Below are positions 4,414-63,615 of a stretch of DNA of 64,000 nucleotides, piece after piece (the first letter of the stretch is position 1; each line of letters opens with the position of its first letter). Position numbers and translations under genes: made by a program. The notes under the pieces are model-generated. The model searched no databases and had not been told where the DNA came from. It saw nothing but the letters and a program-made list of their open reading frames with translations. The stretch comes from Mytilus californianus. Its lineage: Eukaryota. The stretch is from assembly GCF_021869535.1 (NCBI RefSeq), contig NW_026262637.1:16864001-16928000 (forward strand), in the 5' to 3' direction.

Positions 4414-4679
4414 AATTTGACTATAAACATAGATAAAAAAAGGTACAAACTGGACATAATGCACTAGTTCATAAACAAGTGAGAACAATCACCTTCATAT
4501 AGTGCTCAGAATATGACATTCATAAAAACTTGTTCAATATCATTAGAGAACTCTAAATCTTAAATACTGAAAGCCACCTCTGATAAGTACACTGTACTAT
4601 GCAAGATAATGATATAACTGGACTAAAAATACACACAACCTGTAATTAACTGCCTTTACAGCGCTTTCGCGCTTTGATT

Positions 4680-5243
4680 CTACATTGTGAACAATATTTG
4701 GACAATATACAGCTATTTTACGTCTGATGATATCTTCGGGGACACAATGGAATGAGTTATCTATACCGTCAACCAGTGGATATTTGGTTCTAAAATTAAA
4801 TAAACATGTACACTTTGATATAATAATAAGCCAGGAAAGTTAACAAAATACACATTCTTTCTAAGAACTTAAATATACAACTTTTATTGTGGAATTTAAA
4901 ACATTACTTTTCTAAAATATTCAACAAATCATTTCACAGTATTCAATTTGGATATGTTAATAGTTGTTATATTTAATTTCACATTTTTTATCGTTTTGGC
5001 ATATTCATTTTTTCTTTAAATGCCTGTTATTCATATTTTGTTTAACTATATTGTTACATTTTTTTCAAGATTAACACATTGATTTGGCCTTCAAAAATTG
5101 TTTAATGCTGTATGTGTGAGAGGCATAGTACGTAATTCATTCTGAACTTACCCGCATTGCATATAATAAACAATTTGCTGCCATGGCCGGATAACATTAC
5201 ACATGGTTGTCCTTCCTGGTTCGTATTCATACCAAACAGTTGT
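4680..5243 (-). pseudogene. Truncated third copy of gene A (3' half of exon 4, intron 4, 5' half of exon 5)
   Basis: 5152-5243 matches A1 9783-9874 with the gtaagt donor intact. 4789->4680 matches A1 exon 5 from 9419 with the ttttag acceptor intact. It has a 1-nt deletion (gtgaacaat vs gtggtacaat) and ATG->ATA and CAA->CAT changes. Homology stops abruptly at both ends. Confidence 0.9.
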
Positions 5244-5436
5244 ATAGTCTATTCAATTATGAGAATTTCCAAGTATTTGGTCAATTTATCAAATTGTAAC
5301 TATTTAAATGGACACTTGTCTGAATCAGTCAATGAGAAAAGAAGCATGGATGACTTCCATAGGAATGCCAACAGTCTGTTAAACAGGTTTATTTTACAGA
5401 GTTTTATCTTTCTACCTATCTATCTATCTATCTAAG

Positions 5437-6955
5437 AACAAGAAATGATTGTAACAGGATGCTGTTACGAAGTCTCCCAAACGAAGCTCCCATAATTCGT
5501 AATTCCAAGGGTCGCCTGACATTGGGCAACATCCAGTGAAAATTGGTTTGGTCCAGTAAAGTTATATGCATTAGTGATGCCTGGGGACTAACCTTGTATA
5601 TCATTCAAATCATCTTGGCATGACAAACCATAATATATATGGTTTAGGGGTGGGGATCTCGACCATTTACAAAATACTAGAACATTGGGGGTGGGGAGGA
5701 ACCCCTGGGGACTGACCCTATACGTCATTCAAATGTTCATTACATGACGAACAGGAATATATATGGTTTAGGGGTGGGGATCTCAACCATTTACAAGATA
5801 TTAGAACATTGGGGGTGGGGGGAACCCCTGCGGACTGACCGTATACGTCATTCAAATGTTCGAGACACGACAAATAGGAATATATATGGTTAAGGGGTGG
5901 GGATCTCAACCATTTACAAGATATTAGAACTTTCTTAAATGGCAGGGGGTGGGGGTGACCCCTGGGGACTAACCCTGTATTTCATTTGATGTGCTTTATC
6001 ATGACAAACCAGAATATATATGGTTTAGGGGTGGGGATCTCGACCATCTACAAGATATTAGAACTTTCTCAAATGGCATGGGGGTCGGGATGACCCCTGG
6101 GGACTAACCCTGTATATCATTCAAACCATCTTAGCATGACAAACCAGAATATATATGGTTTAGGGGTGGGGATCTTGACCACTTACAAGGTATTAGAACT
6201 TTCTTAAATGGCAGGGGGTGGGAGTGACCCCTGGGGACTAACCCTGTATTTCATTTGATGTGCTTTATCATGACAAACCAGAATATATATGGTTTAGGGG
6301 TGGGGATCTCGACCATTTACAAGATATTAGAACTTTCTCAAATGGCAGGGGGTCGGGATGACCCCTGGGGACTAACCCTGTATATCATTCAAACCATCTT
6401 AGCATGACAAACCAGAATATATATGGTTTAGGGGTGGGGATCTTGACCACTTACAAGGTATTAGAACTTTCTTAAATGGCAGGGGGTGGGGGTGACCCCT
6501 GGGGACTAACCCTGTATTTCATTTAATGGACTTTATCATTTAGAACATTTTCAATTAAAAAGATTGTTTCTATCACAAACGGTTTTCAATTTATAATCAT
6601 TTGAAAATTAAAAAAAATAAAATCCCATAGGGTTCTATAGTAAAACCCTCTTTTCTTTTTGCCCCTCAAAGTACCCCTTTATAAACCCCATTGCACAAAC
6701 AAAACCCTGATTGCACCACTAGACATGTTAGTCTAACATATTGTGAAACCCTAAGTTAATCTGACAAGCGGTTTTGGAGAACGGGTGCGGACAAGTTCAA
6801 ATTTAAAAGCGGCGGAAGAAGAAGAAGAAGAAGAAGAAGAAGAAGAAGAAGAAGAAGAAGAAGAAGAAGAAGAAGAAGAAGAAGAATAATAATAATAATA
6901 ATAAGAACTGAGCAAAAACAATAAGTCTTCCAAAACTTCGTTTGGGAGACTTAAT
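5437..6955 (-). mobile_element. Complete HINE/DINE-1-like (Helentron-associated) element (family 1)
   Basis: Subterminal inverted repeat aagtctcccaaacgaag (5470-5486) pairs with cttcgtttgggagactt (6936-6952). There is a palindrome at the 6923-6952 end and a stem-loop gtaacag-gatg-ctgttac (5451-5468). It also holds a (GAA)24(TAA)n microsatellite (6815-6904) and 7 tandem units of 123-135 bp. This modular layout is typical of DINE-1/HINE/CvA-type elements. Confidence 0.8.
6815..6904 (+). repeat. Microsatellite (GAA)24 followed by (TAA)n
   Basis: Read directly from the sequence. It lies inside the HINE at 5437-6955. Confidence 0.95.
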
Positions 6956-9193
6956 AAAGAATAAATTGTAATCTGTAACTCTCAATCCAAGTGTTAATCG
7001 ATATTTGATAAGATAGATGCAAGAACTTTGAAACGTTTTCGTGGCGAACAAAGAATCTGACTTTTTTTGTTGGAATACCAGTGCAATCTATATACTGGTA
7101 TCTATTATAGTAAAGCAGATGTTAGGTAGAACACTCTAGGAAATCTGTCTCAAACTGGTCCCAATTCTGGCAGATTTCTTTTCTTTTTTTTTAATAGACA
7201 ACATGAAGTTTGGATATAATATTTTTCATGTGTCGAAATGTAACTAAAACATCAACTGCATTTCGCTGGTTTTCTTTCTGGATCCTTTCTCATGGTGTTT
7301 GTGCTGTTACATGTACCTTTTCTACTCCTTGATTATTGCATTATATTGGTTTTTTATCTCCTTGTCAATCAAAACATATTCACTAAGAATTGTTTTCAGA
7401 TGTCCAATTATCAATTCAGAAAGAAAGGGAAATGGAAATATATTGTTCCATTTGTATTTCCGTTATAGATCCTTTTGCTTGATAAAATGTGGATAAACTA
7501 TTTATGCAAGGGTATCAAGTGGTGAGGTTGAAGTCTTGTATTTGAAAGATTCACAAGTCAGTCGACCATTATTAAATATCTATGTCACAGATGATAACGG
7601 ATATGTTCCAATTGTTGCAAAATTGAGAATGGAAATGGGGAATATGTCAAAGAGACAACAACCCGACCAAAGAGCAGACAATGCCGAACCACAATCTCAA
7701 TTGTAACCAAAATCTCGTCTTCTTTTTTCTAAATTGTTACCTCACAACGTAAGACTTGTAACCAGATTTATACTTCCATGAGCAACACGACGTTTGTTTC
7801 GTGTGGAGCAGGAACTCTTTCGGATTACCTGAGTTGACACCAAATTTAAGTGTGATTAGTTTTCGTTATATTTTGCCATTTCGTATACGTTGTCAGTTTT
7901 TCTTCATTTTGTGAGTTGGAAGTGTCCCCTTGGTATCTGCAACCTCTTTTTATGAGGGGAAAATGTAAGGAAACAACGACCTGTACTTATAAAAATGATA
8001 CAAAAGATGCAGTAGACATCAACAATTATTGTAATGACGCATGGTCTTCCACAAGTATTCCTGACACAGACCTTTATATCTCCAAAATTTTAATTCTGAC
8101 GAAATTTAAATATCAACAAAGAACTATATAATGGTCTAGCGTTAAAAAAATAAGCCTGATTTCTTATCATATCAAAGATTTAAATAGTATGAGCTCATCA
8201 GAATGCAGTTACTGAGACTGTTAACATTTGTCTGTAGACTTTTCTCAAATATTTTTTTTCTGATGGCATTACCAAATTTTGAAATTATAATTCCACTATG
8301 ATTCATATTCACATGAAGTTATATTTCGATTGAAAATTTGTATACCGACAGTCAGGTTATCTCTTGTCTTTTATTACTACATATAAATATAACACATTGT
8401 AGACCTTGTAAAATTTATATAGGGAACAATTATGATAATTTGTTACATTATAAAAGCTATTTATGGAATAACGTTAAGCCCAAGGTATCAAAGTTGTTTA
8501 CGATTATGTGAATTATTCATGAATACAATAACAAATAAGAAATGTACATAAACATAGAAAATAGTGTTTCAGCAAAGAGTAAACAAGTTCAAGACCTGCA
8601 TGGAATGATGAATTAATTAGAGCGCTATTTCGATTCCATAAATATCCTGACTTGCAAAATGTCCCAAAATTTGTGAAAGTTGAGTATCACCTAACTTAAT
8701 AACAAGATATTAGCAACTCATAAAGACATGAATGGCGAGTTTCTTTTGCAGACATAATTGTTTTACATGTAAAATCATAGACCCCTCTTTTACAAATTAT
8801 ATAATTTTGAAAATGTATCCAACTTAATTTATACGTAGACTTCGAAAACAAGCCTCCGATGTGTATTTTCAAAGTGACAAATTAGAATTGGCATGTTAAA
8901 TAGATTAGTACATCTACGCTCGTTTGAAAATGTAAACTGTTTCAAACTTTTTTCAATATTGTGTTTTTAAATCTTTTCTCTGTAGGTTTTGCTCACTAAA
9001 CTAAAAAGTCGCAAGACAGTGTTAACGCACAAAATATTGATAATAAACAAGGATATATATTTTAAACAAACTTTATTTTGCAATATCAATATCAAAAATA
9101 GTTACAAAAAAACTAATAACAAGTATTAAAAAATCACAGATTACTTAATGTCACATTGGTGTGTCCAGTAAAGCGACTTACTCGCTGTACTGA

Positions 9194-11174
9194 TTACCAA
9201 CCAAAAGAAGCAAAAAGATTGTCTAATTTAGATTGTTGTGAAATCTTTTTCTGTCTACATTGGAATTTGCTAGCAGCACAGTGTTGTGGTAGGTCAATAT
9301 CCATTTTTCTACATTGTGGTACAATATTTGGACAATATACAGCTATTTTACGTCTGATAATATCTTCGGGGACACATTGGAATGAGTTATCCATACCGTC
9401 AACCAGTGGATATTTGGTTCTAAAATTAAATAAATATGTACACTTTGATATAATGATTATTCAGGAAAGTGACTAAAATACGCACTCTTTCTAAGAACTT
9501 AGATTTACAACTGTTATTGTGGAATTTAATACATTACTTTTTTAAAATATTCAACAAATTATTTCACAATATTCAATTTGGATTTGTTAATAGCTATCAT
9601 ATTTGATTTCACATTTTTTATCATTTTGGCATATTCATTTTGTCTTTACATGCCTGTTATCTATACTTTTTTAACTGTTAAGTTACTTCTTTGCAAGATT
9701 AACAGATTCATTTGGCCTTCATAAATTGTTTAATGTTGTATGTGTGAGAGGGATATTTATACGTAATTCTTTCTGAACTTACCCGCATTGCATATAATAA
9801 ACAATTTGCTGCCATGGCCGGATAACATTACACATGGTTGTCCTTCCTGGTTCGTATTCATACCAAACAGTTGTAAGGTTAGTATAAGAGCTTGGACATA
9901 TACTGCCACATTCTACAATCTGTGGTCCACTTGGATTTCCAATATCAAGTGGGCAAATACTATAAAAGACAAGTTGAAATACATTTGTCATTCAAATAGC
10001 AGGTTGCATTAATTTCTCTTTCTTCAATGACAATTTATATACGTTTTCTGAAGATTATTCTAATGTGGTATTACTACTCTTTCATTTTCTTTGGCATTTT
10101 AACAGTTATGTTTTATTATGACGGTAAGTAAAAATAATTATAAGAATACACTTACTGAGGGTCATCATAAGGAACAGCTGGTTGGTATATTTTACTGGCA
10201 TCTTCTAAATACATCTGGATTTCTTGGTCGTCTAATATAGCCTGTTCTATTGCCAAACTGCATTAAAAAGATAAAGCAGTTATTTACAGTGCTAATTAAC
10301 AAAAATAACAACAGAGCTACTGTCAAATGTTTTTTTTATGTTTCATTCAATTCTTGTGGAAATGTGCCTTATTAAATGTTTGATAATGAAATTGCAAAAC
10401 ATAATGTAACATCTCTTAATCAGGTGTGTCGTTGGCTGTGCGGGATGTATTTTTGTCTTCAATACGCATTAGATATTTGCAACTGGACCCAAATAATCTA
10501 ATAGAGAATATCACATGCGTATTTAAAGTTTTGAGAGATATCCTTCAATTGTTTTAGATTTCGTGCATAAATAGATGTACCACCATTTTCTACACGAGGA
10601 AATTCCTGTCAGGAATATGACATTTGTTTTCCATTCGTTTGATGTGTATGAGTTTTTGATTTTTCCATTTGATAAAGGATTTTCCGTTTTGAATTTTCTT
10701 TGGAGTTCGGTATTTTTGCTATTCTGCTTTTTATATAAGTAGATAGATAATTCAGTTTAGCAGTATCTTCAAATTTATTAGGTATACATTGTAAATGCCG
10801 GAAACAGGGAATGCAGCAGGATGTTTCAAATAATTATTGAAAGCTAAACGGGTGTAATTCGAATTAATTTAACTGCAATTCAAAAAGTAAGTTGAATGTG
10901 GATAAACGATGAGAATTTTGTAATTAAATGGCTACCATTCGTTCACACTGGCTTAACAAATAGCATGCTTCCAGTGCTTCTGGAGAGTTTGAAATTCGTG
11001 CATCAATATAAAATACTGTATAAAAATGTATACGTACTGATTGTATTCTAACGGATCATGGCATATCTTTCCCATGTCTGGCCATCTGTTTTCAATCGGA
11101 TCAACAATACATTTCTTTCCAAATAACCCAAACACACACGGCAATACAGCAAGGAAAAATATACTTTGTCTCAT
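9194..11174 (-). CDS. Gene A1: secreted Cys-rich protein, divergent Spaetzle/neurotrophin-like (incomplete cystine knot), 213 aa
   Basis: Coding exons are 11174-11038 (137 nt), 10257-10156 (102), 9959-9783 (177) and 9419-9194 (226). All introns are GT-AG and phase 2, and the joined frame is open. Protein: MRQSIFFLAVLPCVFG|LFGKKCIVDPIENRWPDMGKICHDPLEYNHLAIEQAILDDQEIQMYLEDASKIYQPAVPYDDPHICPLDIGNPSGPQIVECGSICPSSYTNLTTVWYEYEPGRTTMCNVIRPWQQIVYYMQCGTKYPLVDGMDNSFQCVPEDIIRRKIAVYCPNIVPQCRKMDIDLPQHCAASKFQCRQKKISQQSKLDNLFASFGW. It has a hydrophobic signal peptide, a non-coding exon 1 at about 11460-11432 (donor gtaaac) and AATAAA at 9077-9072. The structure is well supported; the family call is by Cys spacing and similarity to gene B. 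Confidence 0.88.
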
Positions 11175-11431
11175 CTACAAAAAATAATGAAAATATTATA
11201 TATAGAATTTTGGTTTAATGGCAGAAGCTTTCTAATCGAAATAAAAAAATGAAAGCGCTTATTTCGCTTCACAATATATGCAAAATTTGATCGGATTTGA
11301 TAACTTGCATTGTGTCACAAGTAAATGTGTGCTTATTATTTTTCAAAGTAAATAGTATACATCTTATATGTGAGCTTCTTTATATTTTTTCCCTTAATAT
11401 GCTAAAGATGGAGTACAAGAGAATAGTTTAC

Positions 11432-11723
11432 CTTTTTACTTATGTCTCTGTCTATGTTCTGTCATCCACCAGCAGCAGTTATCTTTATATACACAAATTT
11501 CAGTGACAAGGAAATATACATACTGACCAATCGCTGACCATAATGTTTTATTATGACCTCAAAAACAACGTCACGGACATTGTCCTTGATGTGCGTAAAC
11601 TAATTAATCATCATTGTCAAAATATAGACACTATTTGTCAACATTTATTCTATATAAAGGCCAAACTTGACTATTCATATCAATTAGTCCTAATTTTGCT
11701 TAAAGTGACCACGGTTAAAAATG
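11432..11723. promoter_or_regulatory. Bidirectional promoter of A1/B1 with two outward-facing TATA boxes
   Basis: Minus-strand TATATAAAGA at 11491-11482 lies ~30 bp before A exon 1. Plus-strand TATATAAA at 11651-11658 lies ~25-30 bp before an Inr-like tcaatt (11680-11685) and B exon 1, which ends ATG|gtaagt. The same layout is kept in copy 2. TSS positions are inferred. Confidence 0.75.
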
Positions 11724-14700
11724 GTAAGTGAATATATTTCGTTATTCAAAATACAGTTATTTTAAAGAAAAAAATTGAATCTTTCAAAATTGTTGAATAA
11801 ATAATATTTCAAATCCAAAGTGTATAAAGTATGATAATTCATTCAAACATTTTTTGGTTCAAATTGGTCAAAAGTGTCTTATCATTTGTTTTTACAAAAT
11901 ATCGTAGTAAGAACTAATTATATTTATTTCAAACGTTCGGAATTTTAACAAAGTTTAATGTTAAATGCCCCATGGAATTATTTAGCAAACACAACTTTAA
12001 TGTATTAAAAAATTCAGCATATTAGAAATATTCAAAATATGTTTTTCAGTTCAAACTACTACTGACTTGTGCCATCATTGCTTATGTTTCGTGTGTACCT
12101 ATGAATGTATGTAATAACTACAAGTATTTGTATGACCAGTGTCTGCCACACAGGAACTGGATATGTGATAAACCAGCCGGTTATTCCCCTCTCGATATGT
12201 AAGTAGTTCCCATGAATATTACTTTGTTTTCATGATTCACCTAAGATCTGTTTATAAAACACGAATCTTCAACTTCTGTTATTCAGTTTTAATATATTTG
12301 AAATTTTTTGTTTGATTCACCGGATGGTATGAAGGTAAATAAATGCAAGGTATGAATAATTAATGCAAATAATAGCATACAAGATATAATTAAGGAATGA
12401 CTGCAATATTTTTTCTTTCTATGAAGAAATACCATAAAAAATGTGGTTCACACTGAATAACCCGCGTAGCGAGTTATTTAAAAGGGTGCACCGCATGTTT
12501 GAGGTTATTTCGAATAGACAGAAATAATATTACAGTCATTCCTTAATTATATCTTGTATATTATTCTTTGCATTAATTATTTCTATGAGCTGAATCGAAA
12601 TACTTTTGTCTTTAATGTGCTGAAAATGAAGGCAATTGTTTACGAAAATATTGTCAAGATTGAACTTATTAATTTTATTTTTGCATGGTAGCACTTTCTT
12701 TTAAAGTATAAAAATGTAAACATTACAAATTTTAAAGAAGACTGACAGTATTTCAATTGAAATACAGAAACACCAATACTGATGTATACTGTTGTTAATC
12801 AATTGTTTTATAAAATTATATGTTTGTCTCTTTAATTTGTTCTCATTTTAAAGGCGTGGATTGAAACAAAAATTGTCAAAAAGTGATGGATCATTTATCC
12901 ACTATATCAAGTCATGCAGTGAGTGTTTAGGAGATCCAGCTCCATATGGGTAATTATCATTTAAACCTTATTGTATAACAAATAAACATATTCTAATATG
13001 TATGTATTAACATTAAAACCTTATTGCACAATATAGTTACACATAAGTCAACCGATGGGTAAAACTAATATTAATTAACAATAAATGTTATTTAGAGCAG
13101 ATTGGAATGATAATTAAACTGGGTGGATAGATTGATGTTAATGTTCAGTGGAGCATATTACATGCATATCAGAACGAAAACATGAAAGTTAAGAATTTTA
13201 ACAAAATGATTTTTCATCTTTCCATCCAGCTGTAGAGTTTTATTTTTGATGAAAAGGTTTAATATTTTTCTCTGATGACAGTTACATAGATTATTAAGCC
13301 CACCTTAGAAGTGTCTGCATTAGAATGTGGAAGTCTAGAAATTCGAGATTAGTTGTTTCGTTGTTGTGCCCATAACATGATACCCCTTTATCCCATTTCA
13401 ATTAAATTGAAAATTATGTTAAACGGTAGAACAAATTATTTTCTGTCATTCATCTTCAGTTAAGGGATCTATCGTCATCTTTGATCGTGAAATAGAAGAA
13501 AACATATTCCGTCTAGATGTATAATACAATGAGCACATTTCGAGGCAGGCATGCAACTCATTTTTAAGACTTCATTTAAATGAAAAACATTATTTGATTT
13601 TATCTTATTGTTTCAACTGTTTTTGCAAATACGGAATCTGTTTTGATTGATTAAAGAAAAAAAACTTAGCCTTACAAAGGAAGATATCTTAGATAATTTA
13701 ATTTTATGAAGGAATGTACAGTGACCGCATTTTTTCTTTTTCTTTTATTTTTGTAAGAACTGATAGAGATGTTAAAAATCAGTTAGCAATGGTTCTAAAT
13801 TATTTTTATTTCCATATATACTTATATTTCAGGGAAAAAATCGATTATGTAAAGAAACCAGTTTGTCGTGAAGTTAAGATACCAATTGAATATATAAACA
13901 AAACCGTGTATCATGAACTGACTGGAGTAGCAGAAGGCTATGAGGTGTGTCAGGTCATACTGAATGGACCCGACAGAAATGTACAGAAAATATACAGAAC
14001 CGATTGTTACAACGGGTAAGATGATCAACTGTATTTCATTTTTTTTGGTTTTAAAAGCTTCCTAATCATTTAACGTGAAACCCAAAAGCAATTAAGCAAT
14101 AGTGATCCTCTTTGATTGCAGATATAACACATCCTCACCTGAACTTCATCGCGCAATTTATTAATATCATAAAATTACAATCATCGATTGTTGCTTGCTT
14201 AACGCCAAGTGGTCAGTCAAATATCGTCAGCTAATCTTAGGACGGAGGTATTATGGTATATCGTTGTCCTATCGTCCGTCTGTCCGTCTGTCTGGCGTAA
14301 ACATGGCGCACGCCGACTTTAGAATGCATTGAGCGATCTATTTCAAACTTTCACAAAATAATGAGAATGGTTATTTTTGGTGATTTTCACTTTTGTCAAT
14401 AGACAGTTATGGGACTTAAATCTTCAAAATATAAGCAATTTTGCACACCCACTGAATTACACGCTCCATTTGACAAGTTACGGTTACAATGCCGTTTATA
14501 ACGATTGATAAAGACATTCATATCATATTCTCCGTGTGCCCTCCGAACGCTCTTGCTTATATTTAATTATGTTGATGTATATTATTTCTTTTTTAGCATT
14601 CATCTTTTATTTTTTCCGTTAAAGTATTCCTATAAACATTGGAGTTGTATAATGAAAATTGACCAACCAAATTCCTGATAATCCTGCGGAAGTAAATACA

Positions 14701-15184
14701 TATTTTTTCATAAAATCAATTTCTGTTAGTTTTAGGTTTTTTGTAAGGATATACATTGTAACACCAAATCTTAAAAGAGAACTTTGTAAAAGGTTTTGTA
14801 CATGCAATCCTGCTTTTGAAAAAAAAATATTTATTCATTCGTTCATGTTTGTTGTCATCGTTTTGTTAATTGAAAGTTAACCTTTGATTTTTCAGAGATG
14901 AGAGAAAACAGAACAATTACTGTAGATTTGACTATGGGGTGTTCAAGCAATATTTTTGTAGACCAACAAACTTTGTGTACAGAACCATGCTTATTGACTG
15001 TCCATTGACGGGATTACAGTATTACAAAGAAAAGGTATCAACAGCATGTAGCTGTGTTAAAGTCAAATGTTTAACAGGAGAAATTCCAGGACCCGTCAAC
15101 AATCATGGGATCAGACAGGGACCCGCACACATCCAACAAAGTAGACAAAAAACAATAGTTAAAACAAAACCAGGCTTGTTTTGA
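11721..15184 (+). CDS. Gene B1: secreted Spaetzle/neurotrophin-like cystine-knot protein, 239 aa
   Basis: Exons are 11721-11723 (ATG), 12050-12198 (149), 12854-12949 (96), 13833-14015 (183) and 14896-15184 (289). Introns are GT-AG, phases 0,2,2,2, and the joined frame is open. Protein: MFKLLLTCAIIAYVSC|VPMNVCNNYKYLYDQCLPHRNWICDKPAGYSPLDMRGLKQKLSKSDGSFIHYIKSCSECLGDPAPYGEKIDYVKKPVCREVKIPIEYINKTVYHELTGVAEGYEVCQVILNGPDRNVQKIYRTDCYNGDERKQNNYCRFDYGVFKQYFCRPTNFVYRTMLIDCPLTGLQYYKEKVSTACSCVKVKCLTGEIPGPVNNHGIRQGPAHIQQSRQKTIVKTKPGLF. C94/C141/C153/C165/C195-x-C197 and the segment ILN..VQKI..DC match the Spaetzle pattern (IVN..Q.I.IEEC..C..C..P.CC.C). AATAAA at 15286-15291. Confidence 0.88.
12355..12580. 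mobile_element. Small MITE-like inverted-repeat element in B1 intron 2
   Basis: aataattaatgcaaa..tacaagatataattaaggaatgactg at the left end is mirrored by cagtcattccttaattatatcttgta..tttgcattaattatt at the right end. Only the left arm survives in B2 (~42146). Confidence 0.65.
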
Positions 15185-16199
15185 AAATCCGAAGCTTGTA
15201 TACCTGACTGTGATATTTATGTTTTACAATGTTTTGCTATGTGTATATTAGTTTTGTTTTGTTATTGTTACCGTATAAGTACCTAAATAAATTCGTCAAT
15301 TAAGCTATAATATTCATTTCATTATTTGAAGTCTCAAACGTAGATATAATAAATTTTATCACAATAGAAAAGCCCGGTCTCTTAAATTGTTTTTTTTATT
15401 CAGATATAGTTCGTTTATTTGTAGTTTTGCATTATTTACATCTATCCAAGGAACCTGTCCATTATCGCCTTCATGGTTCATAAACCGTTTTGAAATGTCT
15501 GTCGTTCAGACTCAATGTATTAACACTTATAAACAGGACATGAACAGCTTTCAAAAATAAACTAAACACATACCGTATAGAAAGCTTTACATATCCATGG
15601 GAATAAAAATGTGCAACAATTCAAATGGTAAAACCAAAGTCATGACTTACGTTAAAAGCAATAAACGAAAAAGAAAAAAGCAGACAACAACCAATGACAA
15701 CCACTGAAGTTCCAGTTCACTTTAACTCTGAACTCATAAGTTTCAAATGCCATCATTATATTACTTTCATGTTTTAACAAATAGGCAATGCAAAAATGTT
15801 TGAAAGACGTGGATATACTTCAATAATGTAACAACAAAGCGATTGAAAAAGAGATCAAAACATGTATTGAACAAAAATCTCTCCGACTTTCATGGAAGTG
15901 AATAAATTCAACAGAGAACATCAAACATCTGCCATTAGATTTCCGATATGACAAACACTCAAGATGAAACTAACGATGAGCTGATAGGATTCCGGATTTG
16001 GACAAGGCATTTAAATAGTTCATGTGGAAAGGTTAAAGTATTTTTTTCCAATCTAGATCAGTGAAACAACAAAAAAAGGACGTACCAAAAAACAAAACTG
16101 TTGACAAATCAATATGTATTGCCTTTAGGTTATTTTGATAGTATAAAATGGGACTAATACATTAAATGTACCTATTAGTCCAAGGTATAATGCAAATGT

Positions 16200-18782: not shown

Positions 18783-21700
18783 AGAAATCATGCATCAGAG
18801 ACTAAAATCAATTAAAACACATCCCAGGGAGGGATTAAGTGTTTTAAGCCATGGACAGTTAAAGAAGACATGACTTGTGCAATTTAAAGTGTTTCTTTCT
18901 ATGTTGTGATGTTACACTATTGTTTCAGATAAGGGTAAAGGTTTGGTACCATTAAAACGCCTATACCCGCTGCAATTGTTTGCACCTATCAGGAATCTGA
19001 TGTTCAGTGGTTGTCGTTTGTTGATGTGGTTCATAAGTGTTTCTCGTTTCTCGTTTTTTATATAGATTAGACCGTTGGTTTTCCCGTTTGAATGGTTTTA
19101 CACTAGTAATTTTTGGGGCCCTTTATAGCTTGCTGTTCGGTGTGAGCAAAGGCTCCGTGTTGAAGACCGTACTTCGACCTATAATGGTTTACTTTTATGA
19201 ATTTTGACTTGGATGGAGAGTTGTCTCATTGGCACTCATACCACATCTTCTTATATCTCATGACTTGTGCAATGCCAAAATAAAAGTAACGACAGGCAGT
19301 AGGATAGTTAGGATTTCACCTTTTAATAAATATGTATGATGTTATGTATAGATAAAACAATTTCTATATGAAAATAAACGTGGATGTGTATATACAATGT
19401 ATACATCCCAAAAAAAAAACATTCGAAAAGAATACAAATTTAGTTATGTTTTAATTTGTTGATGACAAAATCGATGTTAGTGCCAATGAAAACGATATTT
19501 AAAGATCGTATTACAACATTAATAAGATAACCTTTATTAATAAGTTTGTTTAAAGGTTCAATAAGTTTACACTGATCACACAGTGATTTCCGCGCTTTAA
19601 GTACAATATTACCGTAAAATTTAGGATGTCAAATACCATTTTTTAATAAGTTTTCTACTAGGGCAAAAATGCCACGCATGTGTCACGCATGTACCTAAAA
19701 ACGCATGTGTCACAGGTGTGTCACATGCGTAATACACATGTTTCTTGCCACGCATGGGAATCATGCGTGGTACACATGCGTTCACATGCGTAACACACGC
19801 ATGTGAATCGCATGTGTCAGAAAAACACCTGTGTCACGCATGTGTTGGAAAACGCATGTGACAAATGCGATATTGGCATGTGTAACACATGTATAGTCAA
19901 ACGCATATGTAACACAGGCAAATTTTGTTGACCTGAATTCAAGTTAATTTTTTAACATGAATTTTACGTTAAATTTTTCATGTGAAATTCACATGAAAAA
20001 AAAATTAATTGTGTCCAAGTTGAAAAAAATTAACATCAAAAATAAAACTTGTTTATTAACATCTAATACCTTGTAAGACATGTATTCCATTGAAAATCTT
20101 ATTTTACTTTTAAAAAATTTATTTTCACATGAAACCCCCCTTTTTTTGGATGATCAATGCATTTAAATGGGGACATATAATTGGAACCCCCTTTTATCCT
20201 GGGTTGGGACCCTCCCCCTTTTAAAAATGGCTGGATCAGCCCCTGATTATCCTTAATTGTCACCATAATAAATGGTATTTTATCCAATCAGCTTAGGAAA
20301 ATAATCGCAGGAAAAAAAGGCAAAGTAAATAAAGTTGCAATAATTGTCAGATATGGGTCCATGATCCTGAAAAAAAGTGAGATTAGACTTGTAAAAAGTC
20401 TCTCTCTCTCTCTCTGTCATTCTAAATATATATATATATATAATTCCTAAAGGCAGTAGGCCAGGGGAATCATCCCCCTTCCCCCATAAAATCTTCTTCT
20501 TATTTGAACAATTAAAAGTTTAATCTTTAAAAACATTTATTTTAATTAAGATTTTCATTGGTATTTCTTTTAATACATATACACAGGTAAAAGAAGTATG
20601 CGTTATTGGGAGAATTTGGTGTTAATGGCAGATCTTTTGATCTTCATCACTTTGAAAAAAAATGATTTAGAACTTGGAATATCTAGATGTGTTGTGTTGT
20701 GTTGTGTTGTGTTTTTGTTATTATTGTTATTGAATAACTTTCTCAAAGGTGTGTTACAATAACCTTACATCTCTTTTTATTCCTGTGTATCTGCCAACTA
20801 TCTTGGACAAAAGACAGACAGATACAAGTAGATATATTTAAGTTTTATGTGCTTCATACAGTTATGGAACTAAATTATACATTTACATATTTTAAGTAGG
20901 ATTTTCTTATTTGTAACCCTTGTGTTACAAAAATGACTGATTGTATGTAACATTGACATTGGACTGTACAAGGCTAAATTAAAAATTACCTTTTGGTAGT
21001 TCAAACAAACGTGACCAATTAACATTGTCAATACTTGATTGTTGACCATTCTGATTATCTGACCAAGTACAAAACTATGCTAACAAGATAATACACATGA
21101 GCATATAGAAAGTACTTGAAAAGTTTCAGAGTGTTTGAGGTAGTCTGTCTTTTCAATACGGCTCATAAGATAAAGGGGAAAGCAACACTTTTATCGTGTT
21201 TAAATCACGACAAACAATAGTCACTACATACTTCGTCCCTTATACAATGTACAGAATAATATATCATTATAACTTTATCATACATTTCTTCATCTTTGGT
21301 GTGGAATAAAAGCAAAGGACATAATTACCTGTTTATATTTTACTTGTGTTTCAAGCAAGCATTTGGTGGTTTGAGAGGGGTTTACTGTTATAAACTTACC
21401 ACCTCCACTTATAGTGGAAGCTAACAGAGACATTTGTTGGACTGAAATTGGATGTTTTAATTCACATGAGGAATAGACTTTTTAATTGCGTAGTTCTGTG
21501 ATTGAACAAGAAAAACTTTTAAATCTAGAAGTGTGACCTTTAGGTGGTGGGTAATATGTGTAAATATTCTACTTATATGATGCTGTACAGACTAATTCTA
21601 CGGTGTAGTGCGAATATATAATCGTAGGCCCGCACATGCAGAAGAAGTTTTATACATATTTTTAAACCTGTTGCTCTGATTACACAGATAATCTGTGGTG

Positions 21701-38523: not shown

Positions 38524-40919
38524 TTACCAACCAAGAGAAGCAAAAATATTGTCTAATTTAGATTGTTGTGAAATCTTTTTCTGTCTACATTGGAATTTGC
38601 TAGCAGCACAGTGTTGTGGTAGGTCAATATCCATTTTTCTACATTGTGGTACAATATTTGGACAATATACAGCTATTTTACGTCTGATGATATCTTCTGG
38701 GACACATTGGAATGAGCTATCCATACCGTCAACCAGTGGATATTTGGTTCTAAAAATAAATAAACATGTATACTTTAATATAATGATTAGTCTGGAAAGT
38801 GAACAATATACACACATTCTTTCTAAGAGCTTTAATATATAACTAATATCGCGGAATTCAAAACATTACTTTTTAAAAATACGTGTGTATTCAACAAATG
38901 ATATCACAATATTCAATTTGTAATTTTTATTGGCTATCATATTGAATTTGAATTGTTTGCTCATTTTGGCATTTTACTTTTGTCTTCCATTTGCTTTATA
39001 TGCCTGTTATTTATAATATCATTAACGGTACCAACTTTTCGGCACCAGATGTGCATTTCGACAATAAATGTCACTTCAGTGATTCTCTAGGCCAAAATAT
39101 TTGAAAATCCAAAGCTTATTAAAAAAAAGGAGCTTATAAAACAAAAAGGACAAAAAAGTCGGGCAAGGAATCAGAGCTTTGCATGAGGGGGATATATTCC
39201 TTTATTTAAAATAATTTCCAAAATTGTGTAACAGCAAATTTTAATAACAGAAAATCCGTATTTTCATACCAGTATCGAATTACTGGCTACTGGGCTGAAT
39301 TGATACTTCTTTGCTTACCGGTAATTAAGTTGGCCTCCAAAAACTTTATTATTGTATGTGTGAGAGGGGGTCTCAACTAAATTCTCTTCTCAGAGTCTAG
39401 TTATATGTTCATACCGGTCATACTGATTTCATTTTGAACTTACCCGCATTGCATATAATAAACAATTTGCTGCCATGGCCGGATAACGTTACACATGGTT
39501 GTCCTTCCTGGTTCATATTCATACCAAACTGTTGTAAGGTTAGTGTAAGAGCTTGGACATATACTGCCACATTCTACAATCTGAGGTCCACTTGGATTTC
39601 CAATATCAAGTGGGCATATACTATAAAAGACAATTTGAAATACATCTGTCATGCAAATAGAAGGTTGCACAAATTTCTTTTTCTTGAAACGCCTATCAAG
39701 TCATCTACTTTTTCACTATTTAAATTTTATTTTAATGTGGTTTTTTTTTTCTTTGATATTTTAAAATTTTAAGTTTTTTCTGATGTTATGTAAAAATGAA
39801 GAAGACTATACTTACTGAGGGTCATCATAAGGAACAGCTGGTTGGTATATTTTACTGGCATCTTCTAAATACATCTGAATTTCTTGGTCGTCTAATATAG
39901 CCTGTTCTATTGCCATACTGTAATAAAAAGATAAATCACTTATTAACAAAGGAAATTTAACAAAAATTACAATTTTTTAGCTTTTTTTCTCTCATTTAGC
40001 TCAATTCCTGTTCAATCGTGTCTTATTGAATTTTTGATAATGAAATTTCCAAACTAACTGTAACATCTCTGAATGAGGGGCGTCGTATGGCTGTGCGGGA
40101 TGTATAAACAGTTACGGCCGGTCGAATGCGTTATTATGCCTAGTTCAGTGAGAGTGTCATGCTAGCAAGAATCATTGAATCGATGAGTCCATAAGTTACC
40201 TGTTGCTAATCGAAATTTCCAAACGTATTTAACGTATCGAACCCTCTGTTTACTGAGACGGTAGACATTTACCGCTAATCATTATTTTCGTCTTGAGTAC
40301 ACATTTAATACTTGCCACTGGATATTACCCAAACAATCAAGTAGAGAATATTGCATGCGTACGTAAAGTTTTGAAAGGTTTGAATTTAACGTAATAAATC
40401 TTGATATAAGGAATTCTGATATATTAAGACAACAACTCTTTAGATAAGTTCTTGTGTAAAAGTAATCTCCAGCAGTTATGTTTAAGTTGGAAATGGTAAG
40501 ATTTACGTTGATGTTAAGCAATGCATTATTTTAGCGTTTTAAACTTCCGAAGACAGGAAATGAAGCTGGGCGTTTCAAATAACTACGGTAAATTAATCTA
40601 CATCGTATTGACAAAGACTGCAATTCAAAGGTTATTTGAATGTGGTTACCCGAACAGAATTGTGTAATAAAATGGTTACCATTCGTTCACGCTGGCACAA
40701 CCAGTAGCATGCTTCCAGTACTTCTTGGAGAATTTTAAACTCATGCATCAATATCAACAACTGTATAGAAATGTATACGTACTGATTGTATTCTAACGGA
40801 TCATGACATATCTTTCCCATGTCTGGCCATCTGTTTTCAATTGGATCAACAATACATTTCTTTCCAAATAACCCTAACACACATGGCAATACAGCAAGGA
40901 AAAATGTACTTTGCCTCAT
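38524..40919 (-). CDS. Gene A2: paralogue of A1, 213 aa
   Basis: Exons are 40919-40783 (137), 39917-39816 (102), 39620-39444 (177) and 38749-38524 (226). All splice sites are intact and the frame is open. There are 6 aa differences from A1 (I5T, F15L, L47M, N150S, L207I, F211L) and all Cys are kept. Non-coding exon 1 ends at 41199. Confidence 0.88.
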
Positions 40920-41198: not shown

Positions 41199-41488
41199 CT
41201 TTTTACTTATGTCTCGTCTATGTTCTGTTTGCCATCAGCAGCAGATATCTTTATATACACAATTTCAGTGACAAGGAAATATACGTACTGACCAATTGCT
41301 GACCATAATGTTTTATTATGACCTAAAAACCAACGTCATGGACAATGTCCTTGATGTGCGTAAACTAATTGATCATCATTGTCAAAAAATAAACACTATT
41401 TGTCAACAATTATTCTATATAAAGAATAAACTTGACCATGTATATCAATTCGTCCTAATTTTGCTTAAAGTGACGACTGCTAAAAATG
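41199..41488. promoter_or_regulatory. Bidirectional promoter of A2/B2
   Basis: Minus-strand TATATAAAGA at 41257-41248 and plus-strand TATATAAA at 41416-41423. Colinear with 11432-11723. Confidence 0.75.
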
Positions 41489-44400
41489 GTAAGTGAATGA
41501 ATTTCGTTATTTTAAATCCATTTATTTTAAGGTTTATGTATTGCATTACAATATTAAATCTACAAAGTTGTTAAATAAATAATATTTCTAAACCCCAGTG
41601 TATGAAGCATGATAATTCATTCAACACTTTTTTGGTTGAAATTTGTCAAAAGAGTTGTATGATTTTATTTTTAGAAAGTTTAGTTAAAGCTAATTTTATT
41701 TATTTCACACGTTTGGGTTATTAACAAAGTTTAATGGTTCATGCCAAATGGGATTATTTAACAAAAAAAAACTTAAATGTCTTTTGAAAAATAGCATAGT
41801 TACATGAAATAATCATTATGATATTTGTTTTAGTTCAAACTACTACTGACTTGTGCCATCATTAACTTTGTTTCGTGTGTACCTATGAATGTATGTAACA
41901 ACTACAAGTATTTGTATGACCAGTGTCTGCCACACAGGAGTTGGATATGTGATAAACCAGCTGGTTATTCCCCCCTCGATATGTAAGTAGTTCCCATAAA
42001 TGTAACTTTGTTTTCATAATTCATCTTAAGATATGCCCTTAAGATATCCTTACAAAATGTGAATCTTCAATTTCCGTTATTCAGTTTTGATATATTTAAA
42101 ATTTGTTTGTTGGTTCATTTTATGACTGTAAATAAATGTAAGGCATGAATAATTAATGCAAAGAATAATACACAAGATATAAATATGATTAAAAAAAATA
42201 TAATGCAAGATAGAAAAATAACTTATGCGACTAGGAATAAATATAAGTTTACTAAGTTAAAAAGAAGTGATTCTGAGTATGGTCAACCATACGCGAGGGC
42301 CCTCTTGTTGAAATCAGATACAAATTACTGTTAATAAAACTATTGATGATCTATAGAATCGAAATACTTTTGCCTTGCATGTGCTGAAAAGGTAAGCAAT
42401 TGTTTAGAAATTATTGTCGCCATGGAGACTAATTTTTCCATGGTATCACTTTCTTTTAAAGTATTAAAATGTAAAAATTACAAATATTAAATAAGATTTT
42501 TCAATTGAAATATACATAAACAAATACTGATGTATACCGTTGTTTATCAATTGTCTTATAATTGAAATTGTTGTCTTTTAAATTTGTTCTCTGTTTTAAA
42601 GGCGTGGATTGAGACAAAAATTGTCACAAAGTGATGGATCATTTATCCACTATATCAAGTCATGCAGTGAGTGTTTAGGAGAGCCAGCTCCATATAGGTA
42701 ATTATCATTTAAACCTTATTGCACAATAGATAAACTTATTTAGATATGTATGTATCATTTCTTAGTATATGCATCGCACACTTCAGCTACTATTTCTACC
42801 AATAAATGTCTAAATTATCTCCATACAATTAAGCACCTAAAGTTGTCTCTACTACATTTGATAATAAATGGTAAGAGGTAACGTAATTCAACCGATGGAC
42901 AAATCAATATATGAAATTAATAAAAATATTATTTAGAGCAGAGACGGATTGACAATTAAAAGTTTGGATTGATTGATATTAAGGTCCAGTGGGAATTATT
43001 AGATGCATATCAGAACAGTTAAGATTTTTACCCAAATTAACATTTTTTCTTTAATCTCTCCAACCCTAGTATTATTATTGATGAAAATGGGCAATACTAT
43101 TTTTCTCTAATGACAGTTGCATTTATGATTATAAAACCTACCTCAGAAATTTCTGCACTAGAAAGTGGAAGTCTTGACGGAATGTAATTGTTTAGTTGTT
43201 GTGCCACTAACATGATACCCCTTCATCCCATTTTATTTCAATTAAAAATTATGTTAAACGGTAGAAAAAAATATTTTCTGTCGTTCCTTTTCAGTTTAGG
43301 CAGCAGAGGCGGCTTCTGTCATCTTGGATCATGCAATAGAAGAAATCATTTGGTCTAAATGCATTATGCATTTAGCAAAGTTTGAGATAGAATGCTATTC
43401 ATTTGTAAGACTTTATATAAATGAGAAACATTATTGTATTTCATCTTATTAATTCGACTGTTTTTACAAATACAGAATATTTTTGATTGATTAAAGAAAA
43501 TAAACTTTGCCTTACAATTAAGGGAAGATATCTTAGATATATCAATTTCATAAATACAGTATTTTTTTTCATTTTGTACTACAGCAAAAAAAAAAAGTTA
43601 CTGCATGTTATCTTTTTATTTTTCATTTTCTAAGAACTGATAAATTATTGTTGAAATAAGAATTAAAAAATTAAAAATTAAAAAATCACTTGGAAATGGT
43701 ACCAGATTATTTTTATTTGCATAGATATTTATATTTCAGGGGAAAAGTAGATTATGTAAAGAAACCAGTTTGTCGTGAAGTTAAGGTACCAATTGAATAT
43801 ATAAACAAAACAGTGTATCATGAACTGACTGGAGTAGCTGAAGGCTATGAAGTGTGTCAGGTCTTACTGAATGGCCCCGACAGAAATGTACAGAAAGTTT
43901 ACAGGACGGATTGTTATAACGGGTAAGATGATTAACTGCATTTCATTGACTGATTAAGAAGCTTCATAATCATTACTATACAACTTGTAAAGTGCGAAAA
44001 GCAACTCAGTAATACTGGTCTTGCTTGATTTCAGATATGAACATCTCCATCTGAACTTCATCAGGCAATTTAATTATGTTATATAGTTCAATATATCATT
44101 TGAATGTTGCTTCCGTTATTGTCAGTGGTCAGTAAAATATAAAGTCATCTATAAAGTTGCAATAATGTTAAATAAAGATGCTGATAATATCTTGGCTAAG
44201 TTTCCATAATCCCGTTAAGGACAGATGTATTGTAGTACATCGTTGTCCTACCATCCGTCTGTCCGTCGTAAACATGTCGCATACTGACTTATGAAGGTCT
44301 CCAGCTACTTTATTCCAATTACCCGAATAATCAGAATGGTTGTCTGATGGTCTATATACTTTTTGGTGATTATCACTTGTGTCGGTTGGACAGTTATGGG

Positions 44401-45142
44401 ACTTCGAAATTTAAGAATTTTTTTACACGCATTGAACAACAGGCTCCATTTATAACGCTGACAATGTCTTTTATAACAATTGATGGGGACATATCTATTA
44501 TGTGTTTAGTGTAATTTCTCTACCCCCCCTCCCCCCCCCCCCCCCCATCATTTAACTATTATTTTAACTTTTTATTGTGTTCTTATAAACATTGCAGTTG
44601 CATATATTATAACGAAAATTAATCAACAAAATTCTTGATAATCCTGCACAAGTTCGTATATATTTTATTCACAAAGTTTAAAATTAATTTTTGTTGGCTT
44701 AAGATTTTTTGTATAATATATAATCAAACGAAATCTTAAAAGAGCATTTTATTTGCAAAACTTTTTGTACAATCCCATTTGTTTTATTAATTCATTCATT
44801 CTTTCATTTTTGTATTCTTCATTTTGTTAATTGAAAGTTAACCTTTGATTTTTCAGAGATGAGAGAAAACAGAACAATTACTGTAGATTTGACTATGGGG
44901 TGTTCAAGCAATATTTTTGTAGACCAACAAACTTTGTGTACAGAACCATGCTTATTGACTGTCCATTGACGGGATTACAGTATTACAAAGAAAAGGTATC
45001 AACAGCATGTAGCTGTGTTAAAGTCAAATGTTTAACAGGAGAAGTTCCGGGACCCTTTAACAATCATGGGATCAGACAGGGACCCGTACACATCCAACAA
45101 AGGACAAAAACAATAGTTGGAACAAAACCAGGCTTGTCTTGA
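41486..45142 (+). CDS. Gene B2: paralogue of B1, Spaetzle/neurotrophin-like cystine-knot protein, 238 aa
   Basis: Exons are 41486-41488 (ATG), 41834-41982 (149), 42602-42697 (96), 43740-43922 (183) and 44857-45142 (286). Splice sites are intact and the frame is open. By hand count there are 18 substitutions and 1 codon deletion relative to B1, and all Cys are kept. Confidence 0.88.
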
Positions 45143-61074: not shown

Positions 61075-63615
61075 AATTTTTCTTTTATTTATAATCTTTA
61101 CAATTTTTATTTGACTTTTAATTTTTACATTTTTTTATATATTTTTTTTTTCATATTAAGATAGGCATATTTAGTTTAGGTGAGAGAATGTTTTAAGGAG
61201 GACTTCATGGGTAAGTGCATCCTTAAAGTTGTCTGTAGAGGTTTGATTTGAAATTTCAGGTGGTAATTTATTTCAATCTTTGATTGTTTGGCTGAAGAAT
61301 GAGAATTTAAAACTGTCTTTGTTACATTGGAGTTGTCTGTATGTTCGTTGATTAGGTAGGTCTTGTTTTGGACTGGCTTTTTTTATGAGAATGTCTTGCA
61401 ATGGTATTGCAATTTCATTGTTTATGACTTTATGGAACATTTGAAGTCTAGTTTTTAACCTGCGTTCTTGTAAGGTTTGCCAGTTTAGTTTATGTTGCAT
61501 TTCAGATACACTGCTGGTGTTGTGATATCTGTTGCAAGTAAATCGTGCAGCTCTCCTTTGCACTTGTTCCAGTATGTATATGTTTTCAGAAGTGTGTGGA
61601 TCTCAAACTGTGCAGCAATATTCTAATTTTGGTCTTACTATAGTTTGATAAGCTCTTATCTTTACTAATTTTGAGTTAATTTTTAGATTTCGTCTGATAA
61701 ATGATAAGGATTGATTTGCTTTTGCTGCTGATTGTTATATATGTAAATTTGTTCCATTTAAGATCTGAAGACATTGTAATGACTAGATATTTTGCTGATT
61801 GTACTTGTTCTAGGATATGGCCATGCATGTTGTAATAAAAATGTATTTGTTTTTTCTTTGTTGAGACTCTTAGGATGTTACATTTGTCAGGGTGGAATGA
61901 CATGAGCCAGTCTTTCTCCCATTTTATAGCTGCTTCTATGTGTTCTTGTAGCTTAAGACAATCGTTTTGGCAGGTAAAAGGCCGGTAGATAAAGCAGTCA
62001 TCTGCAAAGAATCTTATTTGGATGTGTTTATGGTAGTCAGGTAAGTCGTTTATATATATAAGAAAGAGTATTGGTCCTAGTACAGCGCCCTGAGGAACGC
62101 CTGATATCGATGTTACCTGAAATGCCATAGTGTTTTAATTTGTAAAGTAAGCGTTTGTGTAGCACTTTATCGAATGCTTTGGCAAAATCCATGATTACTA
62201 GATCAGTTTGTATATTTTTATCATTGTTTTGAGCAAGTTGCATGGTGTATAAGAGATATTACTTGTGATTTGCATGATCTTTTTGCTCTAAATCCTTGTT
62301 GTAGTCCATAAAGTATTTTATTAGTTTCGAGTTGTTTCATCATGTTGCTAGCCAGTATATGTTCAAGTAATTTACATGACATGCAGGTAAGTGAAATTGG
62401 TCTATATTTACCAGGATGATAAAATTGAGAATGGAAATGGGGAATATGTCAAAGAGACAACAACCCGATCAAAGAGCAGACAACAGCCGAAGGCCACCAA
62501 TGGGTCTTCAACGCAGCGAGAAAATCCCGCACCCGGAGGTGGTCCTCAGCTGGCCCCTAAATAAAATTGTGTACTAGTTCAGTGAAAATGGACGTCACAC
62601 TAAACTCCCAAACATATAAATGAACTAAAATTAAAAAACATACAAGACTAACAAATGCCAGAGGCTCCTGACTTGGAACAGGCGCAAAAATGCAGCGTGG
62701 TTAAACATGTTTTGTGAGATCTCAACCCTCCCCCTATACCTCTAGCCAATGTAGAATAAAGAAACACATAGTAATACGCACAGTAAAACTCAGTTTAAAA
62801 GAAATCCGAGTCCGATGTCAGAATAGGTAACAAAAGAAACTAAGCAAAATGACAAAAATGATGTTTGTCTCCTTTTTTGAATACTGGTGTAACGTTGGCA
62901 TGGTTCCAGTCCGATGGTACTTTGCATGTTTCTAGAGATTTGCTGAAAATGATAGTAAGTATATCTGAGGTTATTTCGGTGTTTTCCTTCAGTATTTTGC
63001 CAGCAATAGTATCTGGTCCTGTAGCTTTGTTGGTGTTTATGTTTTAATAAGTTTGTATACGCCTTCTCGACTGATGTTAATTTGTTCCATTTTAGGGTGT
63101 GAACTAGGTTCCATCGTTGGTACTTCTGTATTTGTTTCTGATGTGAAAGAAGATTGGAATTGGTTGCTTAATATGTTTGCTTTTTCATAGGGGTTTGTAT
63201 GAAGGGTACCTTCGCTTCGTAAAGATGCAATGCCGGTGTTTTCATTTCTTATATATGAGTATAGCTTTTTGGGTTGCTTGTTGAAGCATTGCTGGTCTGG
63301 TTCGTACATGGAGCGATTTATTTGTTGGCAGTTGATGTGATACCACTGTCCACAGCTGTCACAGCAGACAGCTTCATTTTGCCATGTGACTGCATATTTG
63401 CATGTTCCGCAAGGATATTTTGGTGTACGTGGCCCTGGATTTGGTTCAAGGGCATAGGAGTTGGTAAGTTGATTCGCGAAACGTATATATATTCATAAAG
63501 GTGCATATCACATATGTTTACATCATTGTTGTTTTCTGACCTGAAGAATCCTCATAAAACTTATCTGGTGCATCTATCTCCTCTACAAAGTTGTATTCGT
63601 ATATAGCAGTCTTTA
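61075..63615 (-). mobile_element. Degenerate CR1/L2-clade LINE (reverse transcriptase and 3' part of ORF2), interrupted at about 62419-62860
   Basis: RT motifs: KYRPISLTCMSCKLLEH, DLVIMDFAKAFDKV.H.RLL.KL.HYGI.G, SGVPQGAVLGPILFLIYINDLP, IRFFADDC, W...W.M.FHPDKC and VQRRAARF..L.W.TLQ.RR...RL..F.K. It has multiple frameshifts and an A-rich tail near 61075-61160. Confidence 0.9.
62419..62860 (+). mobile_element. Dispersed repeat inserted into the LINE (ataaaattgagaatggaaatggggaatatgtcaaagagac...)
   Basis: Removing it rejoins the LINE frame (GDKH|HPGKYRPISL). A 5' fragment of the same repeat lies at about 7620-7685. Confidence 0.75.

Follow-up and report, generated by a model that had tools for sequence, protein, structure and literature searches.

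Can a growth-factor cystine knot give up one of its ring disulfides and persist as a secreted protein, and if so, does such a protein act alone or with a partner? In knots of this kind the six cysteines pair as I-IV, II-V and III-VI, and the I-IV bond threads the ring. The question is raised by 64,000 nucleotides of Mytilus californianus (NCBI RefSeq assembly GCF_021869535.1, contig NW_026262637.1, positions 16,864,001 to 16,928,000 of the forward strand), which we call the window and in which positions are counted from the first letter. The window is AT-rich animal DNA (GC ~32%) and holds two genes, A and B. A preliminary description made from the letters alone had claimed that A lacks both Cys III and Cys VI of a knot that is complete in B.

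The rebuilt gene models (Table 1) reproduce exactly the cysteine numbering and the A/B equivalents of that description, and the span that it had singled out, 9194-9959, turns out to be exactly exons 3 and 4 of the first copy of A. On spliced translation this copy has four coding exons on the minus strand and encodes 213 aa, and the Gly codon right after Cys II is split by a phase-2 intron. Copy 1 of B starts on the opposite strand, 547 bp from the start codon of A, and its ATG is the three-base end of its first exon. The entire A/B module is duplicated ~29.7 kb away, and all four genes are intact. Between the two A copies there are 13 synonymous and 6 non-synonymous changes (dN/dS ~0.1); all of the listed A cysteine sites are the same in copy 2, and the 6 substitutions fall elsewhere. 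A third, truncated copy of A shares 91% identity with copy 1 along 571 bases, departs from it past C168-P-N-I-V and does not reach the C-A-A site at residues 186 to 188.

Table 1. Positions in the window of the A and B genes and of the codons discussed in the text.
Feature	Positions	Strand	Remarks
Gene A copy 1, exon 4 (last)	9194-9419	-	T140 to W213 and stop; includes C168 and C175
A copy 1, Pro143	9409-9407	-	Cys III position
A copy 1, C154	9376-9374	-	
A copy 1, C186	9280-9278	-	
A copy 1, Ala187-Ala188	9277-9272	-	Ala188 at the Cys VI position by alignment
A copy 1, C193	9259-9257	-	
Gene A copy 1, exon 3	9783-9959	-	I81 to the second base of codon G139; C82, C97, C101 (Cys I), C123, C138 (Cys II)
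Gene A copy 1, exon 2	10156-10257	-	helical N-terminal region (helices from the AlphaFold model)
Gene A copy 1, first coding exon	11038-11174	-	signal peptide, C22, C38
Gene A copy 1, 5' untranslated exon	start ~11432	-	RNA-contig joint 11174/11432
Divergent promoter region common to A and B	11432-11723	.	A 5' UTR exon and B first exon
Gene B copy 1	11721-15184	+	239 aa
B copy 1, exons	11721-11723, 12050-12198, 12854-12949, 13833-14015, 14896-15184	+	ATG at 11721-11723
B copy 1, C94	13864-13866	+	knot codon
B copy 1, C141	14005-14007	+	knot codon
B copy 1, C153	14921-14923	+	knot codon
B copy 1, C195-S-C197	15047-15055	+	knot codons
Gene A copy 2	38524-40919	-	213 aa, intact
A copy 2, Pro143	38739-38737	-	
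A copy 2, C186-A-A188	38610-38602	-	
Gene B copy 2	41486-45142	+	238 aa, intact, every cysteine retained
Truncated third copy of A	4678-5244	-	3' part of exon 3, intron, 5' half of exon 4

Transcription and the modelled splicing are confirmed for both genes by contigs from public sequencing runs, mapped onto 9190-15189, that cross their joints. Contigs of two runs from a related species (X1 and X2) span the coding joints of A, the joint that leads to its 5' untranslated exon, and every joint of B, including that at ~11720/12049, while a contig from the window's own species (run X9) crosses the last joint of B only. The A joints 9419/9783 and 9959/10156 are also visible as loose ends of RNA contigs. 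A and B are transcribed within the same libraries (X1 and X2, two libraries of one study). One raw RNA run from the window's own species, of which ~6% was read, gave no reads on the A and B exons, and this empty result says little in either direction.

Several repeats lie in and around the genes. The second intron of B carries a MITE-like element of ~190 bp with terminal inverted repeats (12370-12560, plus strand), whose read and contig depth of hundreds to thousands marks it as a high-copy repeat outside the gene proper. The first intron of A contains a dispersed repeat (10590-10790) that is very deep in all four runs, with loose ends on both sides and a summed contig depth of up to ~17,800. 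Elsewhere, reverse-transcriptase-like ORFs in several frames at 61270-63310 (minus strand) represent the remnant of a LINE-type retroelement, and a long T-rich simple repeat of the (TCT/TTC) type at 6750-7050 yields spurious low-complexity ORFs.

The cysteines of B are C94, C122, C141, C153, C165, C179, C195-S-C197 and C202, with all six knot positions occupied. Those of A are C82, C97, C101, C123, C138, C154, C168, C175, C186 (followed by A-A188) and C193, and MAFFT sets Pro143 of A opposite Cys153 of B and Ala188 opposite Cys197, at knot positions III and VI. The family alignments agree, and the reported absence of both cysteines from both copies of A is borne out. C82 and C97 are additional to the cysteines listed in the preliminary description; C97 is also seen in full-knot relatives, and C82 is limited to Mytilus A and to A-par, a Mytilus paralogue of A. 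Both proteins carry N-terminal cysteines as well, so that mature A has 12 cysteines (ten in the knot domain, two N-terminal) and mature B has 14. Because III and VI are both gone, the loss leaves no cysteine of A unpaired, and because the counts are even in both mature proteins, an interchain bond is not demanded.

Compared directly, A and B are only weakly similar (blastp E 0.023, 23% over 47 residues, shuffle z 2.4), and the alignment therefore relies on the family profile, the cysteine spacing and the intron phases. A profile of A-type sequences matches one of B-type sequences with an hhalign probability of 90% (E 1.6e-6). The introns of the two genes lie at identical positions and are all in phase 2, one of them in the Gly codon after Cys II, and the N-terminal regions have the motifs C...W..IC..P..Y and P-[AV]-P-Y in common. 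The agreement of intron positions and phases, N-terminal motifs and profile-profile match shows that A and B are distant paralogues.

A profile built from the last exons of A and B gave 21 matches among 1.84 billion representative proteins, and the family has members in Mytilus, Saccostrea, Pinctada, Mizuhopecten, Solemya, Mercenaria, Haliotis and Gigantopelta. In RefSeq and GenBank these are named 'uncharacterized', and a literature search by accession found no papers that mention them. In five Mytilus species the A orthologues share 93-97% identity with the window's A and have the same cysteines, the C-A-A included; in a relative, the knot domain is 87% identical, against 47-67% for the signal and N-terminal parts. 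Mytilus also has a second paralogue pair, A-par and B2, the latter distinct from copy 2 of B in the window.

An alignment of 51 family sequences has ten conserved cysteine columns in the knot domain, and Cys III and Cys VI are either both present or both absent in 51 of 51; no aligned member has only one of them. Both are present in Solemya (C-G-T-K-T-C ... C-S-C), in Mercenaria and the gastropods Haliotis and Gigantopelta (C-G-G-x-C or C-R-T-N-C ... C-[ST]-C), and in each B-type protein. Both are absent from Mytilus A and A-par (Pro ... C-A-A), from Saccostrea and Pinctada (Pro ... C-S-L) and from Mizuhopecten (Ala ... C-S-P), and the C-G-T-K-T-C of the Solemya relative corresponds to C-G-T-K-Y-P in A. 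The spacer between II and III ranges from 3 to 11 residues across the family, and ring size runs from eight in abalone and hard clam, with C-G-G-x-C, to sixteen in Mytilus B. A III-VI disulfide would predict the strict co-loss of the two cysteines, from which we infer the pairing. The proposal that both partners of a single bond had been lost is thus upheld across the family, and so is the statement that A cannot form a true knot, because with Pro143 and Ala188 in place of the III-VI pair the canonical ring of II-V and III-VI cannot close.

C123, C168, C175 and C193 occur family-wide and coexist with III and VI in full-knot members. The non-canonical cysteines that had been pointed out as common to A (C123, C168, C193) and B (C122, C179, C202) are accordingly genuine family positions. 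C175, which had been named as a cysteine that might occupy position III or VI after all, is conserved where III and VI remain, and it is therefore not a stand-in for a knot cysteine.

The lineages that have lost III and VI are pteriomorph bivalves only, and they comprise all four groups sampled (mussels, oysters, pearl oysters and scallops). Fixation in all four shows the double loss to be old and under purifying selection, not decay. A tree of the knot domain groups mussels and oysters at 92/90 and leaves the placement of the scallop unresolved; on the full-length tree two changes are needed, but the AU test does not reject one loss alone (p 0.055). Because the co-loss is found in both mussels and oysters and these group together in the knot-domain tree, the replacement of Cys III and Cys VI appears to be older than the mussel-oyster split.

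The head-to-head arrangement of A and B is repeated in other molluscs. In M. galloprovincialis an A-par gene lies head-to-head with a B2 gene, tandemly repeated (locus positions 6260-12539), and in M. galloprovincialis and M. edulis the accession numbers of A, B, A-par and B2 are adjacent on one contig, so the four genes form one cluster. In the oyster Saccostrea cucullata an A-type gene without III and VI stands head-to-head with a B-type gene (locus positions 7500-11553), the last exon of which has a long II-III spacer, C-R-L-G-Y, C-A-P-T-N-F-V and C-S-C. This B-type protein and Mytilus B both have no cysteine at the position of C175 of A, and both retain the cysteine past C-x-C. Solemya and Haliotis have full-knot A-type genes with divergently oriented partners from the family, and these partners are themselves full-knot, carry C-[RN]-L-G-Y and are B-like in motif only. 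Haliotis cracherodii has tandem head-to-head pairs of genes for 245 aa and 242 aa, with 312 bp between them (locus positions 7042-12587 and 18946-21625); in the partner, finger 2 carries a long insertion and the C175 position is without a cysteine. The scallop (Mizuhopecten) gene has no partner within 10 kb. The topology of the knot-domain tree would allow for a single A-type and a single B-type lineage (77/79), and it places the oyster partner with Mytilus B at 96/91. Diverged paralogues that stay linked for so long and share a promoter region are typical of two-subunit hormones.

Whether the fold outlives the ring was approached by modelling. AlphaFold2 with the family alignment was run on residues 20-213 of M. 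trossulus A, a 97% identical stand-in with the same cysteines, and B was modelled on a RefSeq protein that is 91% identical to it, again with the same cysteines. The model of A (mean pLDDT 74.9, pTM 0.67) has two N-terminal helices and two long hairpins, and in the models of both A and B (pLDDT 72.9 for the latter) two beta-hairpin fingers meet at the cysteine cluster. Loss of the knot-like hairpin fold, which would have undone the idea of an open knot, is thus not predicted, and A likely retains a knot-type fold; the alignment behind its model is dominated by full-knot relatives, and the prediction is not independent of these.

Structure searches with the model of A point the same way, all of their matches being modest (Z < 8, TM ~0.5). 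Foldseek against the PDB ranks sclerostin first (E 1.2e-3), then many IL-17A/F chains, NT-3, BDNF/NT-3 and NGF. VIA-align gives coagulogen (Z 6.4 over 130 aa), noggin (5.6), IL-17A (5.1), sclerostin (5.0), NGF (5.0) and Spaetzle (3.7), and cystine-knot proteins make up 38 of the 42 matches listed for A and nearly all of those for B, for which the fold matches rank in the same order. In an ESM Atlas shape search the arthropod Spaetzle cluster is best (TM 0.55 over 154 aa), and language-model features place Spaetzle, NGF, IL-17 and noggin clusters at 0.89-0.91. At the level of sequence, the family profile has a single near-significant match among PDB proteins, sclerostin (E 0.026). Sclerostin has a finger-to-finger bond, C71-C125, and the analogy suggests that C123-C168 of A is such a bond.

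Taken together, we consider it probable that A and B are divergent paralogues in a secreted, mollusc-wide knot family, and that A is an open knot and one subunit of a two-chain ligand with B. In each protein, a helical N-terminal part would precede a cystine-knot domain of the growth-factor type, in which ten cysteines are conserved. The fold of A would survive through the remaining I-IV and II-V bonds and through extra bonds, probably C123-C168 after sclerostin together with bonds that involve C175, C193, C82 and C97. The earlier suggestions that B stabilises A, or that A is a modulator or decoy, stay conjectural, since A would retain about five other disulfides and the open knots of IL-17 fold unaided. 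That A would act as a subunit alongside its full-knot partner is favoured because of the long-term head-to-head linkage and the transcription of both genes in the same libraries. A bolder version, which is possible and which we put forward with some doubt, makes A and B the two subunits of a mollusc-wide heterodimeric cytokine or hormone, linked since before the gastropod-bivalve split. Pteriomorph A would have dropped the ring disulfide and B another conserved cysteine, at the C175 position of A, and these losses could reflect co-evolution of an obligate pair.

Could A instead be self-sufficient, as a homodimer or monomer in which extra disulfides offset the loss of III-VI and B plays no part? 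Its even cysteine count, ten in the knot domain plus two N-terminal, and the scallop gene with no neighbouring partner would suit such a protein, and IL-17 types without 3/6, 2/5 or 1/4 provide functional precedents (PMC11087794). However, the divergent pair and its shared promoter region have been kept from mussel to oyster, and Solemya and abalone have the arrangement with both partners full-knot; this conservation is hard to account for without functional coupling, and we think self-sufficiency rather unlikely. We give little credence to A as a decoy or antagonist that binds B or the receptor of B without signalling, its open knot altering the receptor-binding face. In sequence the family comes nearest to sclerostin and DAN, which are antagonists, and noggin is the second-best structural match, but these matches are below significance, a common fold is uninformative on function, and the full-knot A-type proteins of other molluscs stand in the same paired arrangement. 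An improbable reading, too, is that A and B are divergent mollusc IL-17 proteins and A is the known 'T1C' type without cysteines 3/6. IL-17A, IL-17F and IL-25 are high in all fold searches, and the C-V-P after Cys IV and the later C-P resemble the S-V-P and H-C-P of IL-17A; against this, not one of 28 family proteins matches the Pfam IL17 profile (PF06083) even at E 10, I and II are ~37 residues apart with an extra Cys between them, versus ~22 in IL-17, where II and III are four residues apart, and the matches that span the whole chain, N-terminal helices included, are coagulogen, Spaetzle and noggin. Loss of 3/6 in IL-17 has itself been described (PMC11087794). An artefact of gene model or alignment, or a pseudogene in decay, has next to no probability: it could draw on the weak pairwise similarity of A and B, but spliced transcripts agree with the model, the RefSeq proteins of the five Mytilus species keep the same cysteines, dN/dS is low, and the intact Solemya motif aligns with its altered counterpart in A. 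As far as sequence evidence reaches, this last reading is refuted.

The analysis defines a previously unannotated secreted cystine-knot family that extends from abalone to mussels, with genes in conserved divergent pairs. It also provides a natural experiment in which one knot disulfide has been removed as a pair and kept so across the four sampled pteriomorph groups, which makes A a test case for how much of a knot the fold needs. Few ligands have been identified for the many Toll-like, IL-17 and Trk-like receptors of molluscs, and the A/B family offers direct candidates for receptor de-orphaning.

Among known systems, the models place the family within the growth-factor cystine-knot superfamily at the level of fold. 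The preliminary label 'NGF/Spaetzle-type' holds for this architecture, on the strength of weak fold searches, and does not hold for membership, as none of the 28 family proteins reaches any Pfam cut-off; Pfam searches with single exons of the genes gave nothing. By sequence, the family appears not to qualify as Spaetzle, NGF, IL-17, DAN or noggin. The A-type and B-type profiles, taken singly, had no meaningful match among PDB sequences, and a match of the B-type profile to the chromatin protein EBS is spurious.

Fold searches weakly favour Spaetzle (PF16077) and coagulogen. Horseshoe-crab coagulogen (1aoc) is the top whole-chain match, at Z 6.4 for A and 4.8 for B, the arthropod Spaetzle clusters reach TM 0.55 (A) and 0.47 (B), the Mytilus B2 paralogues score 15-20 bits on PF16077 against a cut-off of 27 bits, and several B proteins are auto-named 'Spaetzle domain-containing' by UniProt. 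However, the window's A and B score nothing on PF16077, no member attains at least 27 bits, the family alignment has no conserved Arg/Lys cleavage site ahead of Cys I, such as the basic site at which the Spaetzle prodomain is released, and there are ten conserved cysteines in place of seven, with III and VI lacking in A. Sclerostin and DAN provide the best sequence hint for the family as a whole, below cut-off. The C-terminal spacing is identical (Cys IV - x13 - Cys - x16 - C-x-C, including C-[IV]-P-D and C-P), sclerostin is the best Foldseek match and has the extra finger-to-finger cysteine pair at corresponding positions, and the C-G-G-x-C ring motif, to be set beside the eight-membered C-x-G-x-C ... 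C-x-C ring of DAN proteins, is found in Haliotis and Mercenaria members and is absent from A and B. On the other side, the E-values are 0.03-0.07, the scores of a few members on PF03045/PF05463 are 13-15 bits against cut-offs of 22-27, the N-terminal helical region has no counterpart, and the II-III spacer of the family varies.

NGF (PF00243) resembles B in the spacing of its cysteines, which is 43, 10, 12, 28, 2 in NGF and 47, 12, 12, 30, 2 in B, and it matches the model of A at Z 5.0. It differs in that no PF00243 match is seen among the 28 family proteins at E up to 10, the family has neither a furin site nor a neurotrophin signature, and the ring is much smaller in full-knot relatives that are not pteriomorphs. 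An apparent F-K-Q-Y-F motif in both B and NGF precedes different knot cysteines and is treated as a coincidence. Noggin, the second whole-chain match (Z 5.6 over 121 residues), is likewise helical in its N-terminal half with a C-terminal knot, but there is no match to the Pfam Noggin profile and its cysteine pattern is another. The cysteine-rich neurotrophic factor (CRNF) of Lymnaea and Aplysia, compared by description only, has ~123 aa and 11 Cys (PMC3966541), against 200-250 aa in the family.

The closest parallel to the loss itself is IL-17, a cystine-knot cytokine that has lost one disulfide as a pair with fold and function kept: incomplete knots there include a vertebrate type without 1/4 and the invertebrate types T1B without 2/5 and T1C without 3/6 (PMC11087794), and some mussel IL-17 isoforms have four conserved cysteines only (PMC8353272). 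The family differs from IL-17 in its cysteine spacing, its extra cysteines and its paired-gene organisation. Because IL-17 already shows this kind of loss, an open knot is no novelty as such and is less surprising than the preliminary description held; what is new is the family itself, the conserved organisation of its gene pairs, and a clean, lineage-wide co-loss of Cys III and Cys VI from one of the two paired proteins.
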